24,601 bases of DNA, taken from NCBI GenBank assembly GCA_000388065.2, contig KB932215.1. The stretch is one strand, 5' to 3'. Made by a program: the position numbers and the translations under genes. The stretch is from Fonticula alba ATCC 38817 (taxonomy: Eukaryota > Protista > Nucleariida). Below are positions 1,540 through 22,400 of this stretch, piece after piece (within the stretch, counting starts at the first letter, position 1; each line of letters starts with the position of its first letter). The notes under the pieces were generated by a model. The model did not search any database. It worked only from the letters and a program-made list of their open reading frames with translations, and was not told the DNA's origin.

Positions 1540-2700
1540 TCACTGCGTGACACAGAAGAGAGCCAGGAACAGGGCGCCCAGGGCCAAGATGCGAACCAGA
1601 ACCGAGAACTGGCTGGCGGCCGAGCGCTCCCCCTTCAGGGCGGCCTCCACCATGGGGGCATGCTCCTTGAGCAGGGGGATGGCCTTCTGCAGGGCCTGCT
1701 TGGTGGCATGGACCGGGACGTCGGCCGAGGCGGGGATGATCTTGGCAGCCAGGATGGCCAGCTGCTGGGCGAAGATGCGCTCAACCGAGGCCATGTCCAC
1801 CGAGTCGATGATCATGCGCACGGCCAGGCCCTTGCGGATCTTGACATTCTGCTCGAACACCTGGCCATTGTCGTAGCACAGGGCCAGCGTGGCGATGGCC
1901 ATGACCTGGGGGATGGCACAGAACTGGAAGATGCTGCGGTTGGACAGGAGGCTCAGGTAGTGGAAGACATCCGGCACATGCTTGAGGGCGTCGGTGATCA
2001 GGTGGTTGAGGCACTGGCGGGCCGGGTTCCGGGCCTGGGTGGCGCGGAAGTCCCCGATGGACTCGGCGTACAGGGACCACACCTCGCGCGGCCAGAACAC
2101 CCGGTTGACGTCGACATCCTCGCGATAGTCGCGGATGATGTTGACCTTCTGCAGGAAGAGCCCCATGCTGTTGGAGAGCCGGGTGTCGCCATTGAGCTCC
2201 AGGGCCGTCTCCAGGCCGGACTGCACGAAGAGCTGGGTCAGGCCGATGCCCACCAGGCCGGCCACATAGTGGCAATACTCCTCCCACTCGGCCACGGAGT
2301 TGACGTCCTGCATGGACCGGTTGCAGAACTTGGCCATGCCGGCGCCCATGTCGCGCGTGATGTCCGAGATGACATTGCGGTAGTGCATTTCCAGGCTCCG
2401 GTAGAAGGCGATGACATTGTCGAAGCGGACCAACAGGTGGCGGTCCTTCTCGTCCGGGCCATTCTCGGTGAAGGTCCAGCCCTCCTTCTCGATGAGGTTG
2501 TAGAAGTCCCGCAGGAGGGGGATCTTCCGGTCCACCGACAGGGTGGGATCGTCCTCGATGGTGTCCAGGCCGCGCAGGACCAGGTAGAAGACGCACACCG
2601 CGTCGCGCAGGCTGCCCTCCAGCTGCTGGATGACCGAGGAGAAGGAGCGCGAGGTGAGCTCCAGCATGTCGTAGCAGATGTGCTCATGGGGGCGGAGGTC
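1540..2700 (-). CDS. FDFT1/ERG9: Squalene synthase (farnesyl-diphosphate farnesyltransferase), main 3' exon; N-terminal exon (about 35 aa by comparison with known SQS) not visible, probably in gap 2731-2961
   Basis: Translation has the SQS motifs CYDMLELTSRSFSSVIQQL, FYLVLRGLDTIEDD, YCHYVAGLVG, MGLFLQKVNIIRDYRED, FWPREVW, FCAIPQVMAIATL and VKIRKG, plus a C-terminal hydrophobic anchor (FSVLVRILALGALFLALFCVTQ*). Phase-0 acceptor ctccAG at 2702-2701 after a pyrimidine tract; TGA at 1542-1540. Confidence 0.97.
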   Translation of the reverse strand, partial: DLRPHEHICYDMLELTSRSFSSVIQQLEGSLRDAVCVFYLVLRGLDTIEDDPTLSVDRKIPLLRDFYNLIEKEGWTFTENGPDEKDRHLLVRFDNVIAFYRSLEMHYRNVISDITRDMGAGMAKFCNRSMQDVNSVAEWEEYCHYVAGLVGIGLTQLFVQSGLETALELNGDTRLSNSMGLFLQKVNIIRDYREDVDVNRVFWPREVWSLYAESIGDFRATQARNPARQCLNHLITDALKHVPDVFHYLSLLSNRSIFQFCAIPQVMAIATLALCYDNGQVFEQNVKIRKGLAVRMIIDSVDMASVERIFAQQLAILAAKIIPASADVPVHATKQALQKAIPLLKEHAPMVEAALKGERSAASQFSVLVRILALGALFLALFCVTQ

Positions 2701-2730
2701 CTGGAGTGGGGGTGGGGGGGACGAGGGCAG

Positions 2731-2961
2731 NNNNNNNNNNNNNNNNNNNNNNNNNNNNNNNNNNNNNNNNNNNNNNNNNNNNNNNNNNNNNNNNNNNNNN
2801 NNNNNNNNNNNNNNNNNNNNNNNNNNNNNNNNNNNNNNNNNNNNNNNNNNNNNNNNNNNNNNNNNNNNNNNNNNNNNNNNNNNNNNNNNNNNNNNNNNNN
2901 NNNNNNNNNNNNNNNNNNNNNNNNNNNNNNNNNNNNNNNNNNNNNNNNNNNNNNNNNNNNN
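2731..2961. other. Assembly gap (231 N), probably hiding the SQS first exon
   Basis: N-run immediately upstream of the SQS acceptor; I could not find an SQS N-terminus in the frames just beyond the gap. Confidence 0.95.
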
Positions 2962-5230
2962 CCCCCCCCCCGTCTCCCGCCTGGTCGCCAGCCGCCGGGC
3001 CGATTGCCTGGAGGAGCGCGGGGTCTCTCGGCCAGCGCGGGGACGCTCCCGGCGCACCGCGGGCCGCGGCGGTTGGGCTTCCACGGCGTCGGGGCCTCGC
3101 AACGGGCTCCGGGGTGCCCCCTTGAGAGTCCTGTCGGCCGGGCGTGCACGTGCGGTGCGGTGCGGGCGATCCGACTGCCTTTCGTCCCCCCCCCCCCCCC
3201 GGGCTGGGGCGGGGCCGGCGCGAGGCGGGGGGCCTTTCCTCGGCCGGCGCCGCGAGGCGGTCTGTGGGGTCCTTCTGGCGCGGCTGGTCGAGCCTGGGGC
3301 CACTTGCGGCGGGGGCTTTGGCGGGCGGGAGTACCCCCCCCCGCTGCGTGCCTTGTCGGGGGGGAGGGACGTGGGCCGGCGCGGCCGGGGCGCATGCGGC
3401 GCGAGGAGGGCCGCGCGCGCGCGCGCGCGCCCGCTCGTCCCCGAGATGCCGGCCGGCCGGCGCGGCCTCTTCTCGCGGGCCCCGGGCACAGGCCGGATCG
3501 TATGATCCCCGCCCCGCCCCGCCCCGCCCCGGGCCAGCGGCGGCCCGGTCGGCGAGACCCGGGGGCCGGGCAGCTGCCTGGGCCCACCTGTGTCAGAGGA
3601 TCCAGGATGGGGCCACAGAGCGGCCGGAGCACGCAGGCGGGCCGGCGTGCGCCGGCGTCGAGCCCACACACCCGGGGCGGTTATGTTGGTGGGGGCGCGC
3701 GCGCGCGCGCCCGGATGGGTCGGCACACGGGCGGCCGCGGTATTCTCCCTCCTCGGTCGCCGTCCCCCCGCCCCGAGGGGGGGCCGCCGCCCCGCGGCAG
3801 GCTCTGCCCCCGCCTTGGGCCCGCGGCTGGCGCGGGCGCGCGCACGAAGCAGGGTTCCCCCCGGGCCGCGCGCGGGACGCGCCAGCTCACGGGGTCCCTC
3901 CGCATGAGCATCGCAGAACGGGCCCTCCGTTCTGCAGCAGCAGACCGCCTCGTGGCGTGTGCGATGCGTACCCCCACCCCACACCCCCGGGGCGGGCGGG
4001 CGCGGGCGGGGTGGGGGCAGGTCCAGGAATGGCGCCATGTTCCCCGGGCCGGCTCGTGTGCCCTCGCCGCGCCGCTTGCCGCCCTGTCTCTGCGGCCCCC
4101 CGCACCGTGTGGCCTGCGAGCCGGCGGGCTTCCCGAGAACCGGGCCGTGAAAAGGCCGGCACCTGCCCGGTCGCCGAGCGGGGGGGGGGTGGCCTCTTCG
4201 GCGCCCCCGGTGCATGGGGAGTGGGCGTGCGTGCGCCCCCTGGGTGGGGGGGAGCGAGGCAGGACGGTCGAGCTGGCCGGATGGCCGCGGGCTGACCGAT
4301 CGCGGCCCCGGGGCGCGCGCAGGGGCCGATAAAGCCGGCGGCCGGGGCCCACAAGCCGCAGGGGCCGAGCACTGAAGGGGGGGGCGGGGGGGACGGGGAC
4401 GGGGGCGGGGCGCAGGGGCGAGGGGGCGGGGCAGATACGTTGGAGTTCCTCCGGGCGCCGGCGCGGCCACAAAATGGCCCGGGCCCGCCGGGCGCGTGCG
4501 TCTCCCCACGGAACCCCCGCCGGCGTCCGGAGTCCGTGCGGTGCTCCCCACGAGTGTGCAGCCAGCCGCCGGCGGCCAATACTCATCGCTGACGAATTGC
4601 AACGGATCGCGGGCGCGTCCCCGGCGGCCGCACGCGCCGCGACCCCGGCCGGCCCGCATGGCAGAGGGGAGGGAGAGAGAAAGAGAGGAGGGGGCCCGTG
4701 CGTCCCGGTGGGCCGCCGGCGCCCGGCGCGGAGGTCGCGGCCGATGGCGGCCCATTCCGGAAGGGGGGGCACATTTTCAGCTGCTCCCGCGGCGGCCCCG
4801 TTTTCCGCGGCTCCCCCGCCCTGTGCGCCGCGCTGCATCCGGCCCACGCCGGGGGCGGGCGGGGGGCGGGGGGGGGGCGCTGGCAGGGTGGGCCCCGAAA
4901 ATGAACTGATGTTCCCCCGGGGGATGCCGGGGGCGCCGGCGCCGGCCCCATCTGCCGCCGTGAAAGGGCCGGCCGGATCCCCCCGGCGATCTCGGCGGGC
5001 CCGGCCTGGAGCGGGATCCCCGTGTATACCGGCCGGGGGCGCCGACGCGCCCGCGCGCGGGGGCCGGGGGGGGGGGACACGCTGGGGGCCGCCGCACAGC
5101 ATTCCGCGGCCGGCTGGCCAGCGGGCGGGCGGGGGGGCCGCGCGCAGGGACATGCACATGGGCTTGTGGGTATACGCGCGCACACGCGGAGGGGGGGGGG
5201 GGGGGGGGGGGGGGGAGGGGATCGGGCCGG

Positions 5231-5240
5231 NNNNNNNNNN
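5231..5240. other. 10-N placeholder gap with duplicated flanks (likely overlapping contigs)
   Basis: ggggatcgggccgg occurs at both 5217-5230 and 5241-5254. Confidence 0.9.
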
Positions 5241-6044
5241 GGGGATCGGGCCGGCCAGCCGACTGGCCCAGCCAGCCGGCCGTCGGTCTGACATGCTGGC
5301 GACCAAGCCAAGGACCTCGCAAGCAAGTGTGGGTACCACGCCACGGGCACCGGGTGCCGGTGTTCGTCCGCCGCAAGTAAGACCAAGTTCACTCTGGGGT
5401 TGATCCTAGGGTCCCCAACCCTCTCCTGGTGTCCTCCTCACGGGATGACATCCGGATGGGGCGCGCCCCGGGCGTCTTTCCCCCGCGCGGCCGCACGGGT
5501 TCCGCGGGAAGGAGCGCAACTCTCCCCCGACACTGCTGGGGTAGACACAAAGAGCCGGGGCATGCTCATCCCCCTGACCCCCCCCCCCCCCCCCCCCCCC
5601 CCCCCCGCCCGCCCCGCAGTGCCGCTTCAGATGGCTGCTGGCGGCGGCGGCCAACACCCTGCGAACGGACCGTTGTGCGGGTGTTTGCGGTTTCACTGCC
5701 CGGCCAGCCGGCGGTAACCCGGTCCGCGCGCGGGTGCGGCTGCTGGCCCCCCCCCTCGCCCGGACTCGGACCTGGCGCGGTCGCGGCCCCTCGCCCCCTC
5801 CCAGAGGGGCAGGCATTTCGGCCGGCAGCCTGGCCGCCCGCCATCCCAGGCGCCGGTCCCCCTCGTGAAGCGTGTTCGAGTCGTACTTTTCCCGCACCTC
5901 CCGCTCCCCTCTCCGGTACCTTGCTCCCTCCCCCCCCCCTTGCTGATCCTCCTCGCCTCTCGGGCTCCCCCCGTCTCACCCGCTCCTCTCCCTCCCACGC
6001 CCCCCCTCCCCCCCACCTGCCCCCGGCTCCACCGCTCCAGAGAT

Positions 6045-8034
6045 ATGTCCATCGTCTCCCAGCTCGTTTCGAGCCTGCCCGTGGTCGGGTCTGGCACTGC
6101 CTCGCCGGTGGCCCTGGCCGTGACCGCCAGCTCCGTCCTGCTGGCCCTCTACTACCTGCTGTTCCACTACAAGACCTCGCACAATGGCCACCGCCTGCCG
6201 CCCGAGATCCCGTACACCATCCCCTGGGTGGGCCCGATGGTCTCGTTCGGTGTGCACCCGATCAACTTCCTGCTGGAGAACCGCAAGAAGGTGCGCCCCC
6301 CCCCCCCCCGGCTCTCTCTCTCTCTCTCTCCCCCTCCCTCTCTCTCNNNNNNNNNNNNNNNNNNNNNNNNNNNNNNNNNNNNNNNNNNNNNNNNNNNNNN
6401 NNNNNNNNNNNNNNNNNNNNNNNNNNNNNNNNNNNNNNNNNNNNNNNNNNNNNNNNNNNNNNNNNNNNNNNNNNNNNNNNNNNNNNNNNNNNNNNNNNNN
6501 NNNNNNNNNNNNNNNNNNNNNNNNNNNNNNNNNNNNNNNNNNNNNNNNNNNNNNNNNNNNNNNNNNNNNNNNNNNNNNNNNNNNNNNNNNNNNNNNNNNN
6601 NNNNNNNNNNNNNNNNNNNNNNNNNNNNNNNNNNNNNNNNNNNNNNNNNNNNNNNNNNNNNNNNNNNNNNNNNNNNNNNNNNNNNNNNNNNNNNNNNNNN
6701 NNNNNNNNNNNNNNNNNNNNNNNNNNNNNNNNNNNNNNNNNNNNNNNNNNNNNNNNNNNNNNNNNNNNNNNNNNNNNNNNNNNNNNNNNNNNNNNNNNNN
6801 NNNNNNNNNNNNNNNNNNNNNNNNNNNNNNNNNNNNNNNNNNNNNNNNNNNNNNNNNNNNNNNNNNNNNNNNNNNNNNNNNNNNNNNNNNNNNNNNNNNN
6901 NNNNNNNNNNNNNNCCCGCCCGCCCGCCCATCCATCTCCAGCATGGTCAAGGGTGGCCTCACCACCGCCGCCTTCCGCAGCTACGTGTCCGACATCCAGG
7001 AGGAGGTCCACCAGTACTTCGCCCGTTGGGGCAACGAGGGCGAGGCCGACCTGTACTCCGCCATGTGCGAGCTGGTCATCAACACCGCTTCGCGCACCCT
7101 CCTCGGCCAGGATGTCCGCTCGCAGCTGAACGACGAGGTGGCCCGCCTGTACCACGACCTGGATCTGGGCTTCACCCCGATCAACTTCCTCTTCCCGAAC
7201 CTGCCCCTGCCGCGGAACATCGTGCGCGACCGGGCCAACCTCCAGCTGCGCGAGCTCTTCGTGTCGGTGCTGCGCAAGCGCGCCGCTCGCCTGGAGAAGC
7301 TCAAGGCCGAGGGCAAGGAGGACTCCGAGGTCCACCATGACATGCTGAACTCCCTGATGAACGCCACCTACAAGGATGGCCGGTCCCTGAGCGAGGTCGA
7401 GGTGGCCGGGCTGATGATCGCCCTGCTGATGGCTGGCCAGCACACTTCCTCCACTTCGGCCACCTGGTTCGGCCTGTATCTGCTGCGCGACAAGGAGTAC
7501 CTGGCCAAGGTCATGGCCGAGCAGGAGAGCATCTTCGGCGATGGCAAGGGCGGCTACGTGCCCCTTGACTTCGAGGGGATCAGCAACTGCGACCGTCTGG
7601 AGTACGTGCTGAAGGAGGTCCTGCGCCTGTGCCCGCCCATCTTCCAGATCATGCGCACGGTCACCGAGGATGTCTACTTCAATGACATGGTCATCCCGGC
7701 CGGCTCGTATGTGGCCGTCTCGCCGTCGGTCTCCTCGCTCGATGGCAAGGCCTTCCCCAACCCGAACACCTTCGACCCGGATCGTTTCTCGCCCGAGCGC
7801 GCTGAGGACTCCACCGAGAAGAACAAGGGCCTGTATGTGCCCTTCGGCCATGGGCGCCACCGCTGCATCGGCGAGCCCTTCGCCTACCTGCAGATCAAGA
7901 CCATCTGGGCGGCCATCCTGCAGACCTTCGAGCTGGAGCCTGTTGGCCCGATGAACCAGCCCAACTTCAACTCCATGATTGTCCTGCCGGAGACCCCGTG
8001 CATGGTCCGCTACAAGCGCCGCGTTCCCCTGTAA
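6045..8034 (+). CDS. CYP51: Sterol 14-alpha-demethylase (cytochrome P450 CYP51); exons 6045-6290, at least one exon in gap 6347-6914, and 6942-8034
   Basis: N-terminal anchor (VALAVTASSVLLALYYLLF) and Pro-rich hinge (PPEIPYTIPWVG); donor GTGCGC at 6291 after NRKK; acceptor ctccAG at 6940-6941. The last exon has the I-helix ALLMAGQHTSSTS, KEVLR (ExxR), DPDRF and heme motif FGHGRHRCIGE; TAA at 8032-8034. Confidence 0.97.
6312..6346 (+). repeat. (CT)n microsatellite in CYP51 intron 1, flanking a gap
   Basis: ctctctct run directly before the N-run starting at 6347. Confidence 0.9.
6347..6914. other. Assembly gap (568 N) hiding CYP51 internal exon(s), including the B'-helix region
   Basis: The CYP51 segment between NRKK and MVKGGL is absent from the visible sequence. 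Confidence 0.95.
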
Positions 8035-9109: not shown

Positions 9110-10906
9110 TCACATCACCTTGGCCAGGTAGAGTGCAAAGCACACGGTGGCCAGGGGCAGCGTGACAACCGTCGATCCGTACGACGCGAGGACCATGCGC
9201 ACGTAGCCGATCTCCTCGGCCGAGGTAAGCACCGAGGTGACCTCCTCCTTGTCCAGGGCGGCGGCAGCGGCTTCCTCCTCGGCCGCCACGGAGGGGCTGT
9301 CGTCGACCCCGGCAGCGGCCTCGGCGGCCACCAGGGCAGCCGCTCGGCGGTGGAGTGCCGCAGGCGCGTTCGGGGCGGTGGTCGTGGGAGCGGCGGCGGC
9401 GGCGGCGGCGGCGGTGGGGGCGGCGGCGGGGGCGACCGCAGGGCCGCCCGTGGCGGCGGGGGCACCGGCCGCACCGGCGGTAGTGCTCCCCGGCGCCCGG
9501 GTGACGGTCGGCGCGCCGAACTGAATGACGCTGATGATGCTGGTGGCCATGGGAACCGCGGCCTGCAGCAGCAGGACCAAGCAGAGGGCCGGGTCCTCCA
9601 GCGGGATGATCCCACGCAGGGGGTCCTCCCCGGCCAGGGGATCGTGTGCGATGTCGCAGCCGCCCCCGCCGGTGGGATCCTCCTGCCACCACTGGGGCGC
9701 AATGCCGGCGAAGGGCCCATCCCCGGCCGACAGGGCGTCCTGGTGGGGATGGTGGTGGTTCACCCACCGGTGCATGGTCAGGAGCATGGCCAGCCAGAGC
9801 GACGCCACGATGGGCATGATGAACTGGTTCATGAAGACCACCAGGGAAATGTTGCCCCAGGTGAGGACATTCCGGTGGCCGCCGTTGGCCGGCAGAAGGG
9901 GCGGGGCCCGGGGCGGCCCGGCGCGCGCGGGCTTGTTCCCACGGCCGATCATGGTCCCCAACGCCAGCAGGCTGATGGGAATGGCGCAGTCGGCCACCGA
10001 GTCCACGGCCTCGGTGATCCACGGCCCGAGTGGCGGGTTGGCACCGAAGAACATGCGCCGCAGCGGGGTGATCAGGCCGATGATGATGGCCGCAATGCCG
10101 GCCAGCGTGGGCGGCGAAAGGACTGGCCCATGGTCGTGGCGCCGACCGGCCGGCCGCCCGCAGGGGAGGGAGACGAGGGGGAGGGGCGCGCGTGGCGATG
10201 GCGACGGCGAAGGTCAGAACAGCGATGGCAGATTGCGTGTGGCGGCGGCGGCGGCGGCGGCGGCGGCGACCCGCATGCATGCGCGCCGTAACACCGACTG
10301 GGCCTCCTCTGGCCCTGGCGCCCCGCTGCCTCGCTTGCTCCGCCGCCTTTGGCCGCCGGCAGGGGCGCCGAGGATGGCAGCCAGGCGCGAGAACATGGGC
10401 ACGTACGACCGCGAAGGGTTTTCCACTTGTCAACCTGCATGCCGCAGGGGGTGCCACCGTCATGCGGCGCGCCGGCCGAGTGGACCGAGGCCCTGTCGAT
10501 GGAGCGCGGCGAGGCCGGGAAGCTGGGCTGCGAGCCCACCGGCGAATGCTCTGGCGTCCAGTACGGGTAGACCCCAGTGCGGATGGGCGAGTCAGCGCCC
10601 TCTGTCATTGTGTGTATGCGTATGTATGTATGTATGTGTGTGTGTGTGTGTGTGTNNNNNNNNNNNNNNNNNNNNNNNNNNNNNNNNNNNNNNNNNNNNN
10701 NNNNNNNNNNNNNNNNNNNNNNNNNNNNNNNNNNNNNNNNNNNNNNNNNNNNNNNNNNNNNNNNNNNNNNNNNNNNNNNNNNNNNNNNNNNNNNNNNNNN
10801 NNNNNNNNNNNNNNNNNNNNNNNNNNNNNNNNNNNNNNNNNNNNNNNNNNNNNNNNNNNNNNNNCCGGCCCGCACGGCCCGCGGCGCCGATCGCGGGCAG
10901 GCACCG

Positions 10907-13324: not shown

Positions 13325-16300
13325 CTAGTAGAAGATATTCCGGATGAAGCACCGGACGCTGGGGATGTCAGACTGGTAGTTGGAGCCGAGGAACTCCGAA
13401 AGCATGTCGCTGGCGTCGGTGGTGGCACCAGGCTCGAGGAGCATGCGGCGCACGCGCTGGCCCTGCTTGCGGTCATTCAACTGATCGGGCGACTGCTTGA
13501 ACCTGCGGTGTGGCGGCCGTGGTGGTGGGAGTGGCAGCAGCAGCAGCAGCAGTGGATGCGGTGGCGGCGGGGCCACGTGTCAGTAGCGGGCTGTGTGTGT
13601 GTGTGTGTGTGGAAGGAAGGAAGAGACGACGGAGGGAACGGCAAAAGACGGGTGAAAGGGAAAGCGGGAAAGATGTCCCTCCCCGTGAATGGGGAGCACG
13701 CACAGCGAGTAGCACACCTGGGCCAGAACGTCGGCCCACAGGTAGCCGTAGTAGCCGGCGTCATAGCCCTGGACCATGTGGAACCAGGAGCCCAGCATGC
13801 AGGGCCGAATGTCGGCATCCGGGTCGCGAACATGGCCGATGGCCTGGCCCTCGGCCTCGGCCTGCACGTAGGCCGAGGCCATGCCGGTGGCGTCGAGGAC
13901 TGCCTGGTCGTAGAGGGCGCGCAGGCGGTCGGCGGTCCAACCGCCGGCCGGCGGCTCGCCATGCATGTCCATGTCCACACGGGACAGGGCGATCTGCCGG
14001 GCGTAGCGGACCCCGAGCCCGGCGGTCCGAGTACGGACCAAGGCTTCCAGGGTCTCGCGCGAGGGGGCCTCCCCGGTGCGGTAGTGCCGGGCCGCCCGGA
14101 GGAGGACGTCCACCGACCAGGCCCAGTTCTCGAAGAGCTGGGACGGCACCTCGAGGAACTCATGCTCCACGCCGGCCGGGTAGGCGGCCGCCGACCATGC
14201 CCACGAGAAGAGCGAGTGCTCGGATTCGGAGAAGACGGCATGAAGGACCTGGTTCACGTGGCGCCATGTGTGTGTGTGTGTGTGTGTGTGNNNNNNNNNN
14301 NNNNNNNNNNNNNNNNNNNNNNNNNNNNNNNNNNNNNNNNNNNNNNNNNNNNNNNNNNNNNNNNNNNNNNNNNNNNNNNNNNNNNNNNNNNNNNNNNNNN
14401 NNNNNNNNNNNNNNNNNNNNNNNNNNNNNNNNNNNNNNNNNNNNNNNNNNNNNNNNNNNNNNNNNNNNNNNNNNNNNNNNNNNNNNNNNNNNNNNNNNNN
14501 NNNNNNNNNNNNNNNNNNNNNNNNNNNNNNNNNNNNNNNNNNNNNNNNNNNNNNNNNNNNNNNNNNNNNNNNNNNNNNNNNNNNNNNNNNNNNNNNNNNN
14601 NNNNNNNNNNNNNNNNNNNNNNNNNNNNNNNNNNNNNNNNNNNNNNNNNNNNNNNNNNNNNNNNNNNNNNNNNNNNNNNNNNNNNNNNNNNNNNNNNNNN
14701 NNNNNNNNNNNNNNNNNNNNNNNNNNNNNNNNNNNNNNNNNNNNNNNNNNNNNNNNNNNNNNNNNNNNNNNNNNNNNNNNNNNNNNNNNNNNNNNNNNNN
14801 NNNNNNNNNNNNNNNNNNNNNNNNNNNNNNNNNNNNNNNNNNNNNNNNNNNNNNNNNNNNNNNNNNNNNNNNNNNNNNNNNNNNNNNNNNNNNNNNNNNN
14901 NNNNNNNNNNNNNNNNNNNNNNNNNNNNNNNNNNNNNNNNNNNNNNNNNNNNNNNNNNNNNNNNNNNNNNNNNNNNNNNNNNNNNNNNNNNNNNNNNNNN
15001 NNNNNNNNNNNNNNNNNNNNNNNNNNNNNNNNNNNNNNNNNNNNNNNNNNNNNNNNNNNNNNNNNNNNNNNNNNNNNNNNNNNNNNNNNNNNNNNNNNNN
15101 NNNNNNNNNNNNNNNNNNNNNNNNNNNNNNNNNNNNNNNNNNNNNNNNNNNNNNNNNNNNNNNNNNNNNNNNNNNNNNNNNNNNNNNNNNNNNNNNNNNN
15201 NNNNNNNNNNNNNNNNNNNNNNNNNNNNNNNNNNNNNNNNNNGGGGGATGGACCACGCGGGAGGGGCGAGCGGAGGGGGGGCAGGCGCGGGGCGCGGGGG
15301 CGAGAGTAACGGAGGCGGCGAGGGGGGCGGGGGGGGGGGGGGAGCAAGAGGCGGGCATGTGTCAGTAGTGCGCAAGAGGCTCTGCAGGGGGAGGGAGGGA
15401 GGGGGGAGGGGGAGGGGTAGGCGCAGCAAGAGAGGGACCCGGGAAAGAGGGACCCAGGTCTGCACCGCCACCGCCGCCACCAGGGCAGCCCGGCTCATCC
15501 GGACCCCCCCCCCCCCCCTTCCCGGCCGGCTGTTGGCAAGCGTGCGCGGCGTACACGGCAAAGATCAGGTCCCGGACCTGGGACACCGGGAAGTATGCCC
15601 GCAGGGCCTCCTCATCGACATTCATGTTGCGCTCGCGCCAGATGCGCTGCAGGAAGGCCACATCCCACCAGCGGATGTCCTCCTGCCCGGCGGGCACCAG
15701 CCCCGGGGCCAGGTCACGCAGGGCCGCCAGCTCGCGGTCGCATTCGGCACGGACGCCGGACTCCTGCGCCTCGCGAAGGAAGGCCCCGACGGTGGCCGGC
15801 TGCTGGGCGATGGTGTCCCCCTGGAGGCGGCGGTCGGCGTGGGTGTCGAAGCCCAGCAGCCGGGCCGCCGCGTGGCGAGCCGTCAGCAGCTCGGCCAGGA
15901 TGTCCAGGTTGCCGGCGCGCACGGCCCGGCGGTCGCGCGCCGCCGACAGACGCCGCCGGGTGCTGGCCACCTGGCACTGCTCGAGCACCACATGCACGTG
16001 CGGCGGCGAGGTGGTCACCACGAAGAAGTGCTCCGGCCCGGGCGTCAGCAGGTCGCCGGTGGCTTGGAGGTCGGCGGCCGGGACGCGCTCCAGCGCGTCG
16101 ATGAAGTCCGCCGGGCAGCCCTCCTGCGCCGGAGGGGACGTGCGGGGCAGAGGGCCGGGGGTAAGGGGAATGCCCGGAAGCAGGAGCGGGACTCGGGCGG
16201 GTCAGGGCGAGCGGGGGCCGGGCACGGGTGCTCGCGGGCGCCAGGGCGTGCGTACCAGCTCCTCACGCGAGAAGTACACCTTGGCGGCGTTCTCATTGAT

Positions 16301-17785: not shown

Positions 17786-18425
17786 CAGCTGCCCCGCGCC
17801 CCCCCCCCCCCCGGTCATGGCCAAGCTGGTCCGGGAGCCTCCTGGGTGTTGCGCGCGCCCTGCGCCCCCTCCCAGCCGGTGCCCGCGAGCCGGGATCGCT
17901 GGGGGCTCGCTGTCAGCGCACGCGCGATCACGGGATCATGTCTTTTCGCCGGCGCCCCGTCGGCGCTTTGCCCGCGCTTCTGTTGCGCGGCGATCCGGCG
18001 ACCCCGCCGGGGCCTGCCCCCGGGAAGGGGGCCTGCCGTGCGCGGGAAGGGGGGGACCGAAAAAGGGGCCCTTCGTGTGATGCGCTTCCTTGGGTGCATG
18101 TGTGTGTGTCTGCGTTGACCGGCGGCGGTCGCTACCCCCCCCCTCCTCCTGCCCTCCCTCCGGGCGGCACGATCGCGGCGAGGGGGAAGGCAAAGAAAAC
18201 AAGACTACAGAGGGATTATTTATTTGGGATTATTCTTTTTCCTCCGGGAGAGAAGACAGAGGCCACCAGCGGCGGATGGTGGGCACAGGGCAGGGGCTGA
18301 TAGGATGCGGTGGCCGACACGCACACGGACACACCCACAGCAGGGGCGCCTGGCGTTCCGGCGCATGGAAGACCGCGACTCTGCGGCGGGGCCAGGGCCC
18401 GGCGGGAGGGCCCATGCCCCGGCCA

Positions 18426-18781
18426 CTACATGACCTGGCAGGAGGACTCGCTTTCGGCCGGGGGCGGCGCCGGCGGGGGGACCGGGTTGCGGGTGGGCAG
18501 GCCGTGCCGGGCACGAATCTCATCGTACCGGCGCTCGCGCTCGGCGTGGCGCTCATTCAGGCGCTCCTTGCGCGCGGCGTCCTCCTGAGCCTGGCGCTCC
18601 TTCTCCTTGTCCATTTCGGCCTTCTTGCGCTGGGCATGGCGCGGCAAACACAAGGGGGGGGGGGGCAAATGGGTGTCCGTACGGCCTGGACCTCGGGGTC
18701 CTCCTCCTCGTCGTTGAAGCCCATCGAGTCGGTGATGCCCTTGACCTTGTTGCCGATGATGGCCTTGGTGATGGAATCCAT
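18426..18781 (-). CDS. CPLX-like: Complexin (synaphin)-like protein with C-terminal CAAX box, 100 aa; exons 18781-18683 and 18629-18426
   Basis: Spliced product: MDSITKAIIGNKVKGITDSMGFNDEEEDPEVQARKKAEMDKEKERQAQEDAARKERLNERHAERERRYDEIRARHGLPTRNPVPPPAPPPAESESSCQVM*. Phase-0 53-nt intron GTACGG...gcccAG. By eye it follows complexin architecture: N-terminal helix (MDSITKAIIG vs MEFVMKQALG), DEEEDP vs DEEKDP, charged accessory helix, ungapped central helix, and CQVM vs CPLX3 CHVM / CPLX4 CSVM. Confidence 0.8.
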
Positions 18782-19086
18782 GATGATGAAAGTGGTGGCG
18801 GTGGGCACCCTCGTGCGGATGCGTCTTTGTGCAGGGGGTGCGGTGAACAGAAGGGAGAGAGAGAAAGGGGGGGGGGGGGGATGGCTGGGGGGGATATGGC
18901 CGGTGCCGGGCCGTGGCCGGTACCGGCTGGGTGGCCAACAAAAAAGATCGTCATGATCGGCGGCCCGGACCCGGGGGAGGTTGCGTGCACCAGCACACGG
19001 ATCGGCCTCCGCCATCGCCTCTCGCCCGCCGGGGTCGCCGGGCCGTTGTGTGCCTCAGGAACCGGGTCCGGTGCTGTGATGTCCCC

Positions 19087-19087
<1 letters not shown>

Positions 19088-19134
<47 letters not shown>
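19088..19134 (+). repeat. Poly-C tract (about 47 nt) between the UVRAG-like 3' end and the complexin-like 5' end
   Basis: Direct read; a G-run on the minus (transcribed-sense) strand, so G-quadruplex-capable. Confidence 0.9.
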
Positions 19135-19136
<2 letters not shown>

Positions 19137-19462
19137 TGCCCGCCCCCCCCTCCCCCCCCCCCCCAGCGCCCCCCCCCTCCCCAGGCTGACTTCCGTGTCT
19201 CTTCCCTTTGCCCGACTCCGGCCCCCCCGGCCATCAGCGCACCGCGGGGAGGTGGCCCACAGCCTGGGCTCGCCCAAGCAGACCACGGCCCCATGTCCCA
19301 ACGGACGGCGATCTGCTTGAGTGCATCTATTTTTTGGCCCGCCCGGGGGGGGGGGGGGGGGAGAAGGGACGGGGACTTCCCGCCCGGGCCTCGCACGGCG
19401 GCCGGACATGCGCATGGAAAAAGGCGACGCCGGAGGGGGAAGCGGCAAGGAGACCGGATGCT

Positions 19463-22400
19463 CTACTGGGCGAGCAGGGCATCGGGACACCTCCCGGCAG
19501 GGGGGACGACGGGGGCCGGGCTGGCGGCCTCCGCCTGGGTCGGGGAGTCCTCCTTGTCGGAGGTGGGAGTCCCCGGGGCGGGGATCTCCTCGGAGCCGCC
19601 GAGTTCGGCGGCGCCAGATCGCCCGGCCTCCCCGGCCGGGGCCCCGATCGACGCGTCCAAGGTCCGCTCCGGGGACTGGCCGCCATCCCTGGCCATGGAC
19701 GGCGGCGCGCGCCGGGAGTAGAACTCCACATTGGCGAGGGACATCGGCCGGTAGGAGTAGAACTGCCGCGGGGCGCCATCCGGGGTGTCCTCATCCAGGG
19801 CACACAAGTCCATTTGGTGGCGAATCCAACTGAGCAAGCCGGCCAGCGGCTTACTCGGGATCAGGGTCAGCGCCTGGTTTGAGGCAAGATGGACCTGGGA
19901 GCAGGGAAGGGGGGGGGGGGGGAGGAGGGGCGAGCCAGCAATGGGTCAGGCAATTGGTATGGGGCACAGCCCATCAAAAGCAGCAGCAGCAGCCTGTGCA
20001 TGAGATCCCAGGCGGAGTGTGCGTGTGTGTGTGTGCGTGGGCGTGGGCGTGCGCGTGTGCGTGTGCGTGGGCGTGGGGAGGAGGGAGGAAAAGACAGGCA
20101 GACGTACCGCGCTTAGCAGGCGCTGGAGGAACAGATAGTACGGGGTGTTCAGGCCGGACACATGTGCCATTGGAGAGAGACCGCCGGGGGTGGCGGTGGC
20201 GGTCCCCCCGGCGCCCGCGGCCCCCGGCGTGGCGGCGCGCAAGGACGGGGTCCGCGACAATGGCGGCGAATGCGACAGCGAGAAGCTAGACGAGCTGGCA
20301 TAGGAGTAGCGCGAGAGTGTGGGAGCCGGCTGCGCAGGGAGCTGCCCGGAGAAGGACCCGGGGCGCGAGGAGCTGGGCGTGCTGTCAGCCGGGAAGGGAG
20401 GAGGGGAGGGCAGTGCCCGCACACGGAGGGGCAGCATCACCTTGTCAGAGGGGGGGGGGGCAGGAGGGGGAAAGAGAGGGCGATGCCGGCACACATGGAG
20501 GGGACCATGGGGAACGAAAGGGAGAAAAGGCGAGAGAGAGAGAGAGGGGGGGAGAGGGAGGCCAGACGCACGTTGGCCCGGAGCCGAAGGATGGCCGAAG
20601 GACGCGCGCCAGATCCATGAAGAGTGGACCATTGGCCAGGTGGGCCTCCGGGATTGCCGAGTACGCGAGCACCAGGGAGGCCAGATGCAGCGCCAGCCAC
20701 AATGCCGGGTGGGGGTTCGGATCCTCCTTGGAGGTGGCTGGACGCACGGCAGCCGGGGCAGGGGGAGGAAGACATGTCAGACACCCGGGGAGCCTCGTCA
20801 AGAAAAAAAAACACCCCCCCGCGAGTGGCCCACGCGTATGGGCAAGAGCCCCGCAGATGAGGGGGGAGGGGCAAAGCAACGCACAGGCCTGGTGATCAAA
20901 CAGGGGAGACAGTGTGAAGGGACCAACCGAGTCGTGCTTCAGCACGGCCGACGCCCGACTCGAGGAGAATGTCCCGGATGCCAGGCGGTTGAAGAGCCGG
21001 ATGGAGGGCGATCGGGAGACCAGGTCGCCCGGGTCGGCGTGCACCGCCACCGGGAAAATCCGCAGGAGCTCCTCCAGCAAGGATGCCCGGCGGGCCGACA
21101 GGAGCCGGAACTGCTCGACGGCGAGGGAGCTGTGTGCGTGTGTGCGTGTGTGTGCGAGAGAGAGCGTGTGTGTTGGCGTGTCCGGTGTGGCCGGTGTGTG
21201 CGTGCGCGTGTGTTGGCGTGTCCGGTGTGGGCATGCGCATGGAAAGGAACGTGAGTGGCACAGGGGGAATCGGCACGTGAGTGAAGCGTGCAAGGGCCCT
21301 GGGCGCACCGAACGGAGAGGATGCCCGACTCGGCGTGAATGTTCCGCGCGGCCAGCAGGGCAGATGTCGCGGCGTCGGCCTCCTGCAGGTCTCGGAGCTG
21401 CTGGATCTGCTGGCGCTTGGCGGCAACCTTGGCACGAACTGCGGGGAAGACCAGCACGCAAGCACATCCCGCGGCCCGCGGTCCCCCGCCCGCCCACCAT
21501 GGCGGATGTGAGGGTCAGACAAATGCCGGCAGGTGCAAGGGAAGGGCGCTGAATGGGGGCAATCCGGGTGCGTACGCGTGTCTCGATGGCGAGTGAGGCG
21601 CTGGAGGCGCTCGGCGGCCCGCTGCCGGCGCAGGGCCGCCGTCAGCAGGGCGTCCATGCAGGCGGCGGCGCCCGGGTCCGGCAGGACCACCGACTCGACC
21701 GACTCCGCCAGGAAGCGGCTGGGTCCCTCGATGCACTCGTTCGCCGGCCGGGCATCCCCCCGGGAAGAGGGCGACAGAGGAGGGCCACTGGCGGGGATCC
21801 CGAGAAGCGGGTCGAGGGAACGGCGCTTCCTTTCCAGGGCGTCCATCCGGGCATTGAAATGACGCACCAAGCGACACAGGCTGGCCGGGGGGGGAGGGGG
21901 GGGAACGGACAAAGTCAGCGCGAGCCGCCAATGCAGATGCAAGGAAGAGGGCCCCAAGGCGGGAAGCCCCAGGAAGGTACCCGATCAGTCGCCAGCTGAG
22001 AGATGTGTCGTGCACATGGTCGTCACTGTCGAAGTGGCGCTGGAACAGGGCAAGCGACGGCCCGGGGCCGGCATCCTGGGCCACCTCGACAAAGGAATCG
22101 GACGACAGCGACGTGTGGAGCCCCAGCGATCGGGAAGCCGTGGGGTAATCCTGGTCGGAGGGGGGCTCGGGCGATGGCGCGGGCGAGGCGTCCGGCGACG
22201 ATTGCGGCGCCTCGGTGACAAAGGTATCGCCGGCCAAATTGATCAGCATCTCCGGCTCGTCCAAGCCGGAGGCGCCTGTGGACATGGCCAAGAGCCGGAG
22301 CTCCGGCGCCAGGGCCGGATCGCCGGAGGGCTGGGCCCCGTACAGGCGAAACTGCGACACCAGCAGCAGCGATCGGGGATGCAGCGAGCACACGCGCACC

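Follow-up and report, generated by a model that had tools for sequence, protein, structure and literature searches.

A short spliced gene in Fonticula alba, missed by public annotation, probably encodes a minimal complexin

Recent papers trace the complexin (synaphin) family to unicellular holozoans, exemplified by Monosiga, and take this timing as an argument that complexin originally acted without synaptotagmin (PMC13454271; PMC9750855). A 2026 study reports that synaptotagmin-independent complexin activity requires the central helix together with a C-terminal membrane-binding element (PMC13454271). The CAAM boxes of complexins III and IV are farnesylated and are required for targeting (PMC2171701). 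CAAX boxes occur in many invertebrate complexins as well, and the box has been argued to be ancestral to the family (PMC2171701; PMC4611016). Here, we describe a gene that probably belongs to this family in a 24,601-nucleotide stretch of the genome of the nucleariid Fonticula alba ATCC 38817 (contig KB932215.1). This whole stretch is referred to below as the window, and all positions are counted within it. An initial annotation, made from the sequence alone, had interpreted the locus as complexin-like, and our analysis supports that interpretation. We put at roughly 0.8 the probability that F. alba has here a real gene of two exons, expressed but overlooked by public annotation, which codes for a minimal member of the complexin/synaphin family.

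The gene lies on the minus strand, where two coding exons (18781-18683 and 18629-18426) specify a protein of 100 amino acids (aa) with a mass of 11.4 kDa and an isoelectric point of 5.5. The product is acidic, with 22 Asp/Glu and 19 Lys/Arg residues. In the list of open reading frames (ORFs) the exons sit in separate frames, exon 1 within a 152-aa ORF (18557-19015) and exon 2 within one of 171 aa (18426-18941). The initial annotation had noted this division between unrelated frames, and rereading the sequence led us to the same coordinates, strand, exon borders, and translation that it had given. It had also proposed the intron at 18682-18630, and removal of that intron is now seen in RNA. Assembled RNA (Logan) contigs from four runs, representing two samples, carry the junction 18683/18629 and skip the 53 nucleotides (nt) of a GT..AG intron. 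These contigs, which measure 579-613 nt in runs X6, X7, and X8 and 492 nt in run X12, cover 18211/18212-18629 and 18683-18876 with zero mismatches. They terminate at 18211/18212, where plus-strand poly-T loose ends mark the poly(A) tail.

Codon periodicity is strong across the whole coding sequence (CDS), with GC contents at the first, second, and third codon positions (GC1/2/3) of 0.67/0.43/0.92. The adjacent CYP51 exon has values of 0.63/0.38/0.92, with the same GC3. The in-frame stretch preceding the ATG (18782-19015) lacks such periodicity (0.67/0.65/0.69) and the CDS possesses it, and we therefore assign the start codon to 18781. Taken together, these data show transcription, splicing, and polyadenylation of the gene, as well as native codon usage. 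A poly-C tract (18877-18893) lies directly upstream of the assembled 5' end and may have shortened the RNA contigs; the real 5' end of the transcript may be located somewhat further upstream, at the start of this tract. Also near the 5' end is a long G/C-rich simple repeat (19075-19182), which reads as poly-Pro/poly-Gly in ORFs and was skipped as a repeat in read mapping.

The initial annotation had left aside whether the locus was already annotated. Whether exon 2 was taken alone or within its 171-aa ORF, no protein containing it was found among the 37- to 299-aa proteins of a collection of 5.8 billion clusters. In an exhaustive phmmer search of 1.84 billion representative proteins, exon 2 likewise retrieved nothing at an E value of ≤1e-3, not even the protein itself, although the neighboring CYP51 of the same assembly is present in public protein sets. 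The gene is thus absent from these sets, and therefore unannotated. JGI metagenome contigs held no relative of exon 2. In full-text searches of the literature, which did not extend to InterPro or to the main account of complexin distribution by Yang et al. (EMBO Rep 2015), we found no publication pairing complexin with Fonticula, Thecamonas, Sphaeroforma, Spizellomyces, Allomyces, Holomycota, or chytrids; apparent matches proved to be occurrences of "complexing".

Each exon was scanned singly against Pfam-A (24,736 families), in which the Synaphin family (PF05835) has a gathering cut-off of 27 bits, and for both exons Synaphin was the sole match. In exon 1, residues 1-31 fell on profile positions 1-31 (E = 0.0019; 18.9 bits), and this match survived when the exon was scanned within the 152-aa ORF. 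In exon 2, residues 3-48 of the exon fell on profile positions 34-80 (E = 0.036; 14.8 bits). Two non-overlapping, adjacent pieces of the protein thus pick out the same family, in the correct order and with Met1 on profile position 1. The two scores, obtained from exons scanned singly, total ~33 bits, from which we infer that the spliced protein would pass the 27-bit cut-off.

We also compared the protein directly with complexin-1, of which residues 48-72 were verified as exact against PDB chain 3rk3_E (with numbering from 5w5c_E) and residues 1-47 as exact against 5w5c_E. The initial annotation had aligned residues 53-77 to complexin-1 residues 48-72 without gaps. This alignment holds, with 9 identities and 14 positives in 25 positions and a BLOSUM62 score of 38, the highest among the 35,241 six-frame 25-mers of the window. 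None of 5000 whole-protein shuffles attained that score, and 4 of 5000 did so when only the charged helix was shuffled. The N-terminal region and the DEEEDP segment had also been described as complexin-like, and their resemblance is borne out by a local alignment to complexin-1 residues 1-29 with a score of 47, which was attained in 0 of 5000 shuffles.

From end to end, Smith-Waterman alignment of the spliced protein to complexin-1 residues 1-72 gave a score of 99, placing residues 1-77 on 1-72 with three short gaps. The null scores were 36 ± 6 for whole-protein shuffles (z = 10.4) and 47 ± 7 for shuffles within three composition blocks (z = 7.1), and a score of 99 was not attained in any of 2000 shuffles. 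With BLASTP, the spliced protein shared 36.4% identity with complexin-1 over 77 columns, at 41.6 bits (E = 4e-7) unadjusted and 32.3 bits (E = 1e-3) after composition adjustment, both for a search space of 3 Mb; phmmer gave E = 4.7e-4 at Z = 6500. In a protein-atlas comparison based on language-model features, a complexin-like Synaphin cluster ranked top for exon 2, with a score of just 0.67 and with 21 of 100 hits being Synaphin, a weak signal; the same comparison was uninformative for exon 1. As judged from these alignments, the similarity to complexin is collinear, taking in the N-terminal domain, then the acidic cluster, and finally the accessory and central helices. Homology of the 100-aa protein to complexin is, on this sequence evidence, highly probable.

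The predicted architecture is in keeping with such homology. In a single-sequence AlphaFold2 model of exon 2, a helix spans exon-2 residues 2-42, with a predicted local distance difference test (pLDDT) score of >90, and is followed by a disordered tail. In the numbering of the full protein, this modeled helix (residues 35-75) matches the accessory and central helices of complexin. When the helix model was compared with the AlphaFold DB clusters by Foldseek, the only matches were to unrelated segments of helix, an expected outcome for a lone helix. The protein ends in CQVM, a feature absent from the initial annotation.

Within the central helix, the ungapped alignment preserves R48, K49, A57, E58, R59, E60, I66, R67, and G71 of complexin-1, and changes R63 to Tyr, K69 to Arg, and Y70 to His. 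The initial annotation had listed precisely these nine retained residues and three replacements, correctly in both cases; the same alignment also contains Y52>L and M62>R. Four of these positions, R48, R59, K69, and Y70, are SNARE contacts of complexin-1, and mutating them jointly eliminates the binding of SNAREs in mammals.

The gene lies on F. alba scaffold KB932215.1 (427,202 bp) of GCA_000388065.2, an accession assigned to this species in a preprint. It is ~10 kb from CYP51, and the CYP51 locus of that record agrees with the window across 18,034 shared bases, all identical; the public annotation compared around CYP51 ends 392 bases away from the gene. In a maximum-likelihood CYP51 tree, the window protein falls within the opisthokonts (100/100), outside Capsaspora and Metazoa (100/98), and sister to aphelids plus fungi (92/89), the position expected of a nucleariid. 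Because the scaffold is that of F. alba and CYP51 is placed in this way, the gene is in a holomycotan. The initial annotation had recognized that an animal or choanoflagellate scaffold would remove the novelty of the locus, and the scaffold is neither. Nor is its reading refuted by the Synaphin comparison or by the RNA evidence on the intron, both of which it had named as possible grounds for refutation.

It is also important to point out several results that weigh against assigning the protein to the complexin family. Neither exon alone attains the Synaphin gathering score, and the exon-2 match is lost upon trimming the tail or scanning the 171-aa ORF. In the comparison with the Synaphin profile that the initial annotation had suggested, Synaphin was the only family matched, and its pieces were in order, but each piece remained under 27 bits. 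Single-sequence phmmer searches with each exon against PDB chains found no complexin, and an abundance of Glu, Arg, Lys, and Ala makes the sequence prone to spurious helix-helix similarity. Because the phmmer search with exon 2 yielded no relative at E ≤ 1e-3, conservation cannot be followed in any orthologue. Additionally, only two of the four residues R48, R59, K69, and Y70 are identical, with K69 conservatively replaced by Arg, Y70 replaced by His, and Tyr in place of R63. These observations might be explained by chance or convergence, such that the gene is real and small but encodes a charged helical protein with no shared ancestry with complexin. The sub-threshold Synaphin matches, the fragility of the exon-2 match, the PDB searches, and the modest (exon 2) or uninformative (exon 1) language-model results are all compatible with this explanation, and there is also a selection effect, in that the gene was chosen by eye out of a whole-genome scan. 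It is nevertheless difficult to reconcile with the ordered matches of non-overlapping pieces to one family of 24,736, starting with Met1 on profile position 1, or with an end-to-end alignment that retains a z of 7.1 when composition is kept within blocks and a composition-adjusted BLASTP E value of 1e-3 at proteome scale. The size, the helix borders, and the CAAX ending fit the family as well. We thus regard coincidental resemblance as unlikely.

Alternatively, the protein may be a descendant of complexin that no longer occupies the SNARE groove and instead acts with another partner as a farnesylated, membrane-tethered helical protein. Replacements among the contact residues (R63>Y, Y70>H), together with Y52>L and M62>R, and the very short C-terminal domain would be in line with such a change. 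However, R48, R59, I66, and G71 are retained, K69 is conservatively Arg, and the N-terminal domain is the best-conserved part of the protein; we know of no role for the complexin N-terminal domain outside fusion. Loss of groove binding therefore seems rather unlikely to us. It could also be that the gene is a true complexin that arrived by horizontal transfer from a holozoan or by contamination of the assembly, in which case it would be uninformative about the opisthokont ancestor. In favor of such an origin, a single holomycotan has been shown to have the gene, and no copy from a fungus or another nucleariid was found, no search aimed at these having been made. Against this stand the 427-kb Fonticula scaffold, on which the gene lies ~10 kb from a CYP51 of holomycotan tree position, and the GC3 of 0.92, which equals that of the neighboring gene. 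Identical fragments of the locus also occur in further DNA runs, of which X1, X2, X3, and X5 may derive from the assembly's own sample and hence may not be independent. Furthermore, no close known protein was found in the 1.84 billion searched with exon 2, so that a recent donor is not visible. A foreign origin thus appears very unlikely, and a minimal complexin native to F. alba remains our preferred reading of the locus.

For a complexin of this kind, homology suggests how it might act. The central helix (residues 53-77) would run antiparallel along the groove that the R-SNARE forms with the syntaxin-type Qa-SNARE in the assembled exocytic bundle, and the N-terminal ~26 residues would promote fusion. 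By homology also, Cys97 would be farnesylated, after which the last three residues would be removed and the new terminus methylated. The lipidated C terminus may then tether the protein to the vesicle or plasma membrane, replacing the C-terminal membrane-binding domain of the animal proteins. The Fonticula protein would in this way provide both a central helix and a membrane element, each in minimal form. Its likely task in the amoeba is to tune stimulus-dependent exocytosis; any connection with the secretion of stalk matrix, as raised in the initial annotation, is speculative.

Given vertical inheritance, complexin would go back to the last common opisthokont ancestor or earlier, and fungi would either have lost it or retain copies that have so far escaped detection. 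Descent from that ancestor is probable, albeit somewhat less so than homology itself. The gene accordingly suggests that the origin of complexin precedes the animal-fungal divergence, a suggestion drawn from one species and assuming vertical descent. A fuller scenario can be put forward tentatively, at a little short of even odds. Here, complexin arose before the split as a farnesyl-anchored SNARE-groove binder of ~100 residues, working without a partner of the synaptotagmin-1 type; in Fonticula it gates stimulus-dependent secretion, possibly the burst of stalk matrix, and the fungi have lost it. Should a nucleariid indeed possess a complexin, the origin of the family would shift to the opisthokont ancestor, loss in fungi would be implied, and an ancestral form anchored by a CAAX box would gain support. 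The function that complexin had prior to synapses could then also be studied in a culturable, non-neuronal organism. Very short spliced genes are missed by annotation, and therefore surveys of "synaptic" proteins that draw on proteomes only can under-count them.

The features of the locus are collected in Table 1.

Table 1. Positions within the window of the complexin-like gene, its transcript, and the parts of its product
Feature	Position	Strand	Description or evidence
Transcript (5' UTR, two exons, 3' UTR; UTR, untranslated region)	18211..18876	-	Assembled from RNA; RNA contigs
5' UTR	18782..18876	-	Without an ATG ahead of 18781
Exon 1, coding part	18683..18781	-	Residues 1-33; N-terminal domain resembling that of complexin, with the acidic DEEEDPE cluster
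Spliceosomal intron	18630..18682	-	53 nt, GTACGG...CCCAG; junction 18683/18629 in all four RNA runs
Exon 2, coding part	18426..18629	-	Residues 34-100, then TAG stop at 18426-18428
Predicted continuous alpha-helix	18504..18626	-	Residues 35-75; AlphaFold2 single-sequence model of exon 2
Putative central-helix equivalent	18498..18572	-	Residues 53-77; ungapped alignment to complexin-1 residues 48-72
Proline-rich tail	18441..18497	-	Residues 78-96; pLDDT 60-65, without secondary structure, predicted to be disordered
CQVM, CAAX-type box	18429..18440	-	Ends in Met (farnesylation type); read from the translation
3' UTR	18211..18425	-	AATAAA at 18224-18219; cleavage/poly(A) site near 18211

Upstream of the gene, on the same strand, an open frame at 19466-19945 (-) shows coding-like periodicity (GC3 of 0.86) and is probably the last exon of a neighboring gene; its product, guessed at 116 aa, had no matching record. 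Elsewhere in the window, SQS_PSY (squalene synthase, -) and CYP51 (+) are arranged head to head at 1540-8034, their identities being confirmed by Pfam. The public CYP51 model (363 aa, 6943-8034; gene region 6184-8034, +) has its N terminus cut by the assembly gap at 6347-6914. It covers only P450 profile positions 123-460, and the open frame extends upstream of the gap. This gap is one of six runs of N (1347-1496, 2731-2961, 5231-5240, 6347-6914, 10656-10864, and 14291-15242), which account for the apparent AT-rich dips in composition and several of which interrupt the SQS, CYP51, Mem_trans, and Peptidase_M3 genes. For the region 17900-19300, identical fragments at low depth occur in DNA runs that carry the label of a different organism (2025), and also in metagenomes of soil and sludge, which reflects either the presence of Fonticula in those samples or cross-contamination. 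Those runs give identical fragments only, and thus no divergence with which to test for selection.

Among known complexins, that of Monosiga brevicollis resembles the Fonticula protein in belonging to a unicellular host, and it has been cited in support of complexin predating synaptotagmin (PMC13454271). The hosts differ in that Monosiga is a holozoan whereas Fonticula stands on the fungal side of the opisthokonts. With the vertebrate complexins III and IV and the CAAX-bearing invertebrate complexins, the Fonticula protein shares a CAAX box with a final Met (CAAM type). Complexins III and IV, however, are ~160 aa long and carry a long C-terminal extension, and farnesylation of the Fonticula protein is a prediction. 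The comparison with mammalian complexin-1 (PDB 1KIL, 3RK3, and 5W5C) extends to the order of the parts: an N-terminal domain beginning at Met1, an acidic Asp/Glu cluster followed by Pro, an accessory helix, and a central helix, with 36% identity between Fonticula residues 1-77 and complexin-1 residues 1-72. At 100 aa versus 134 aa, the Fonticula protein is the shorter of the two, and where complexin-1 has a C-terminal domain of ~60 residues with an amphipathic membrane-binding motif, it has a 19-residue proline-rich linker and CQVM.
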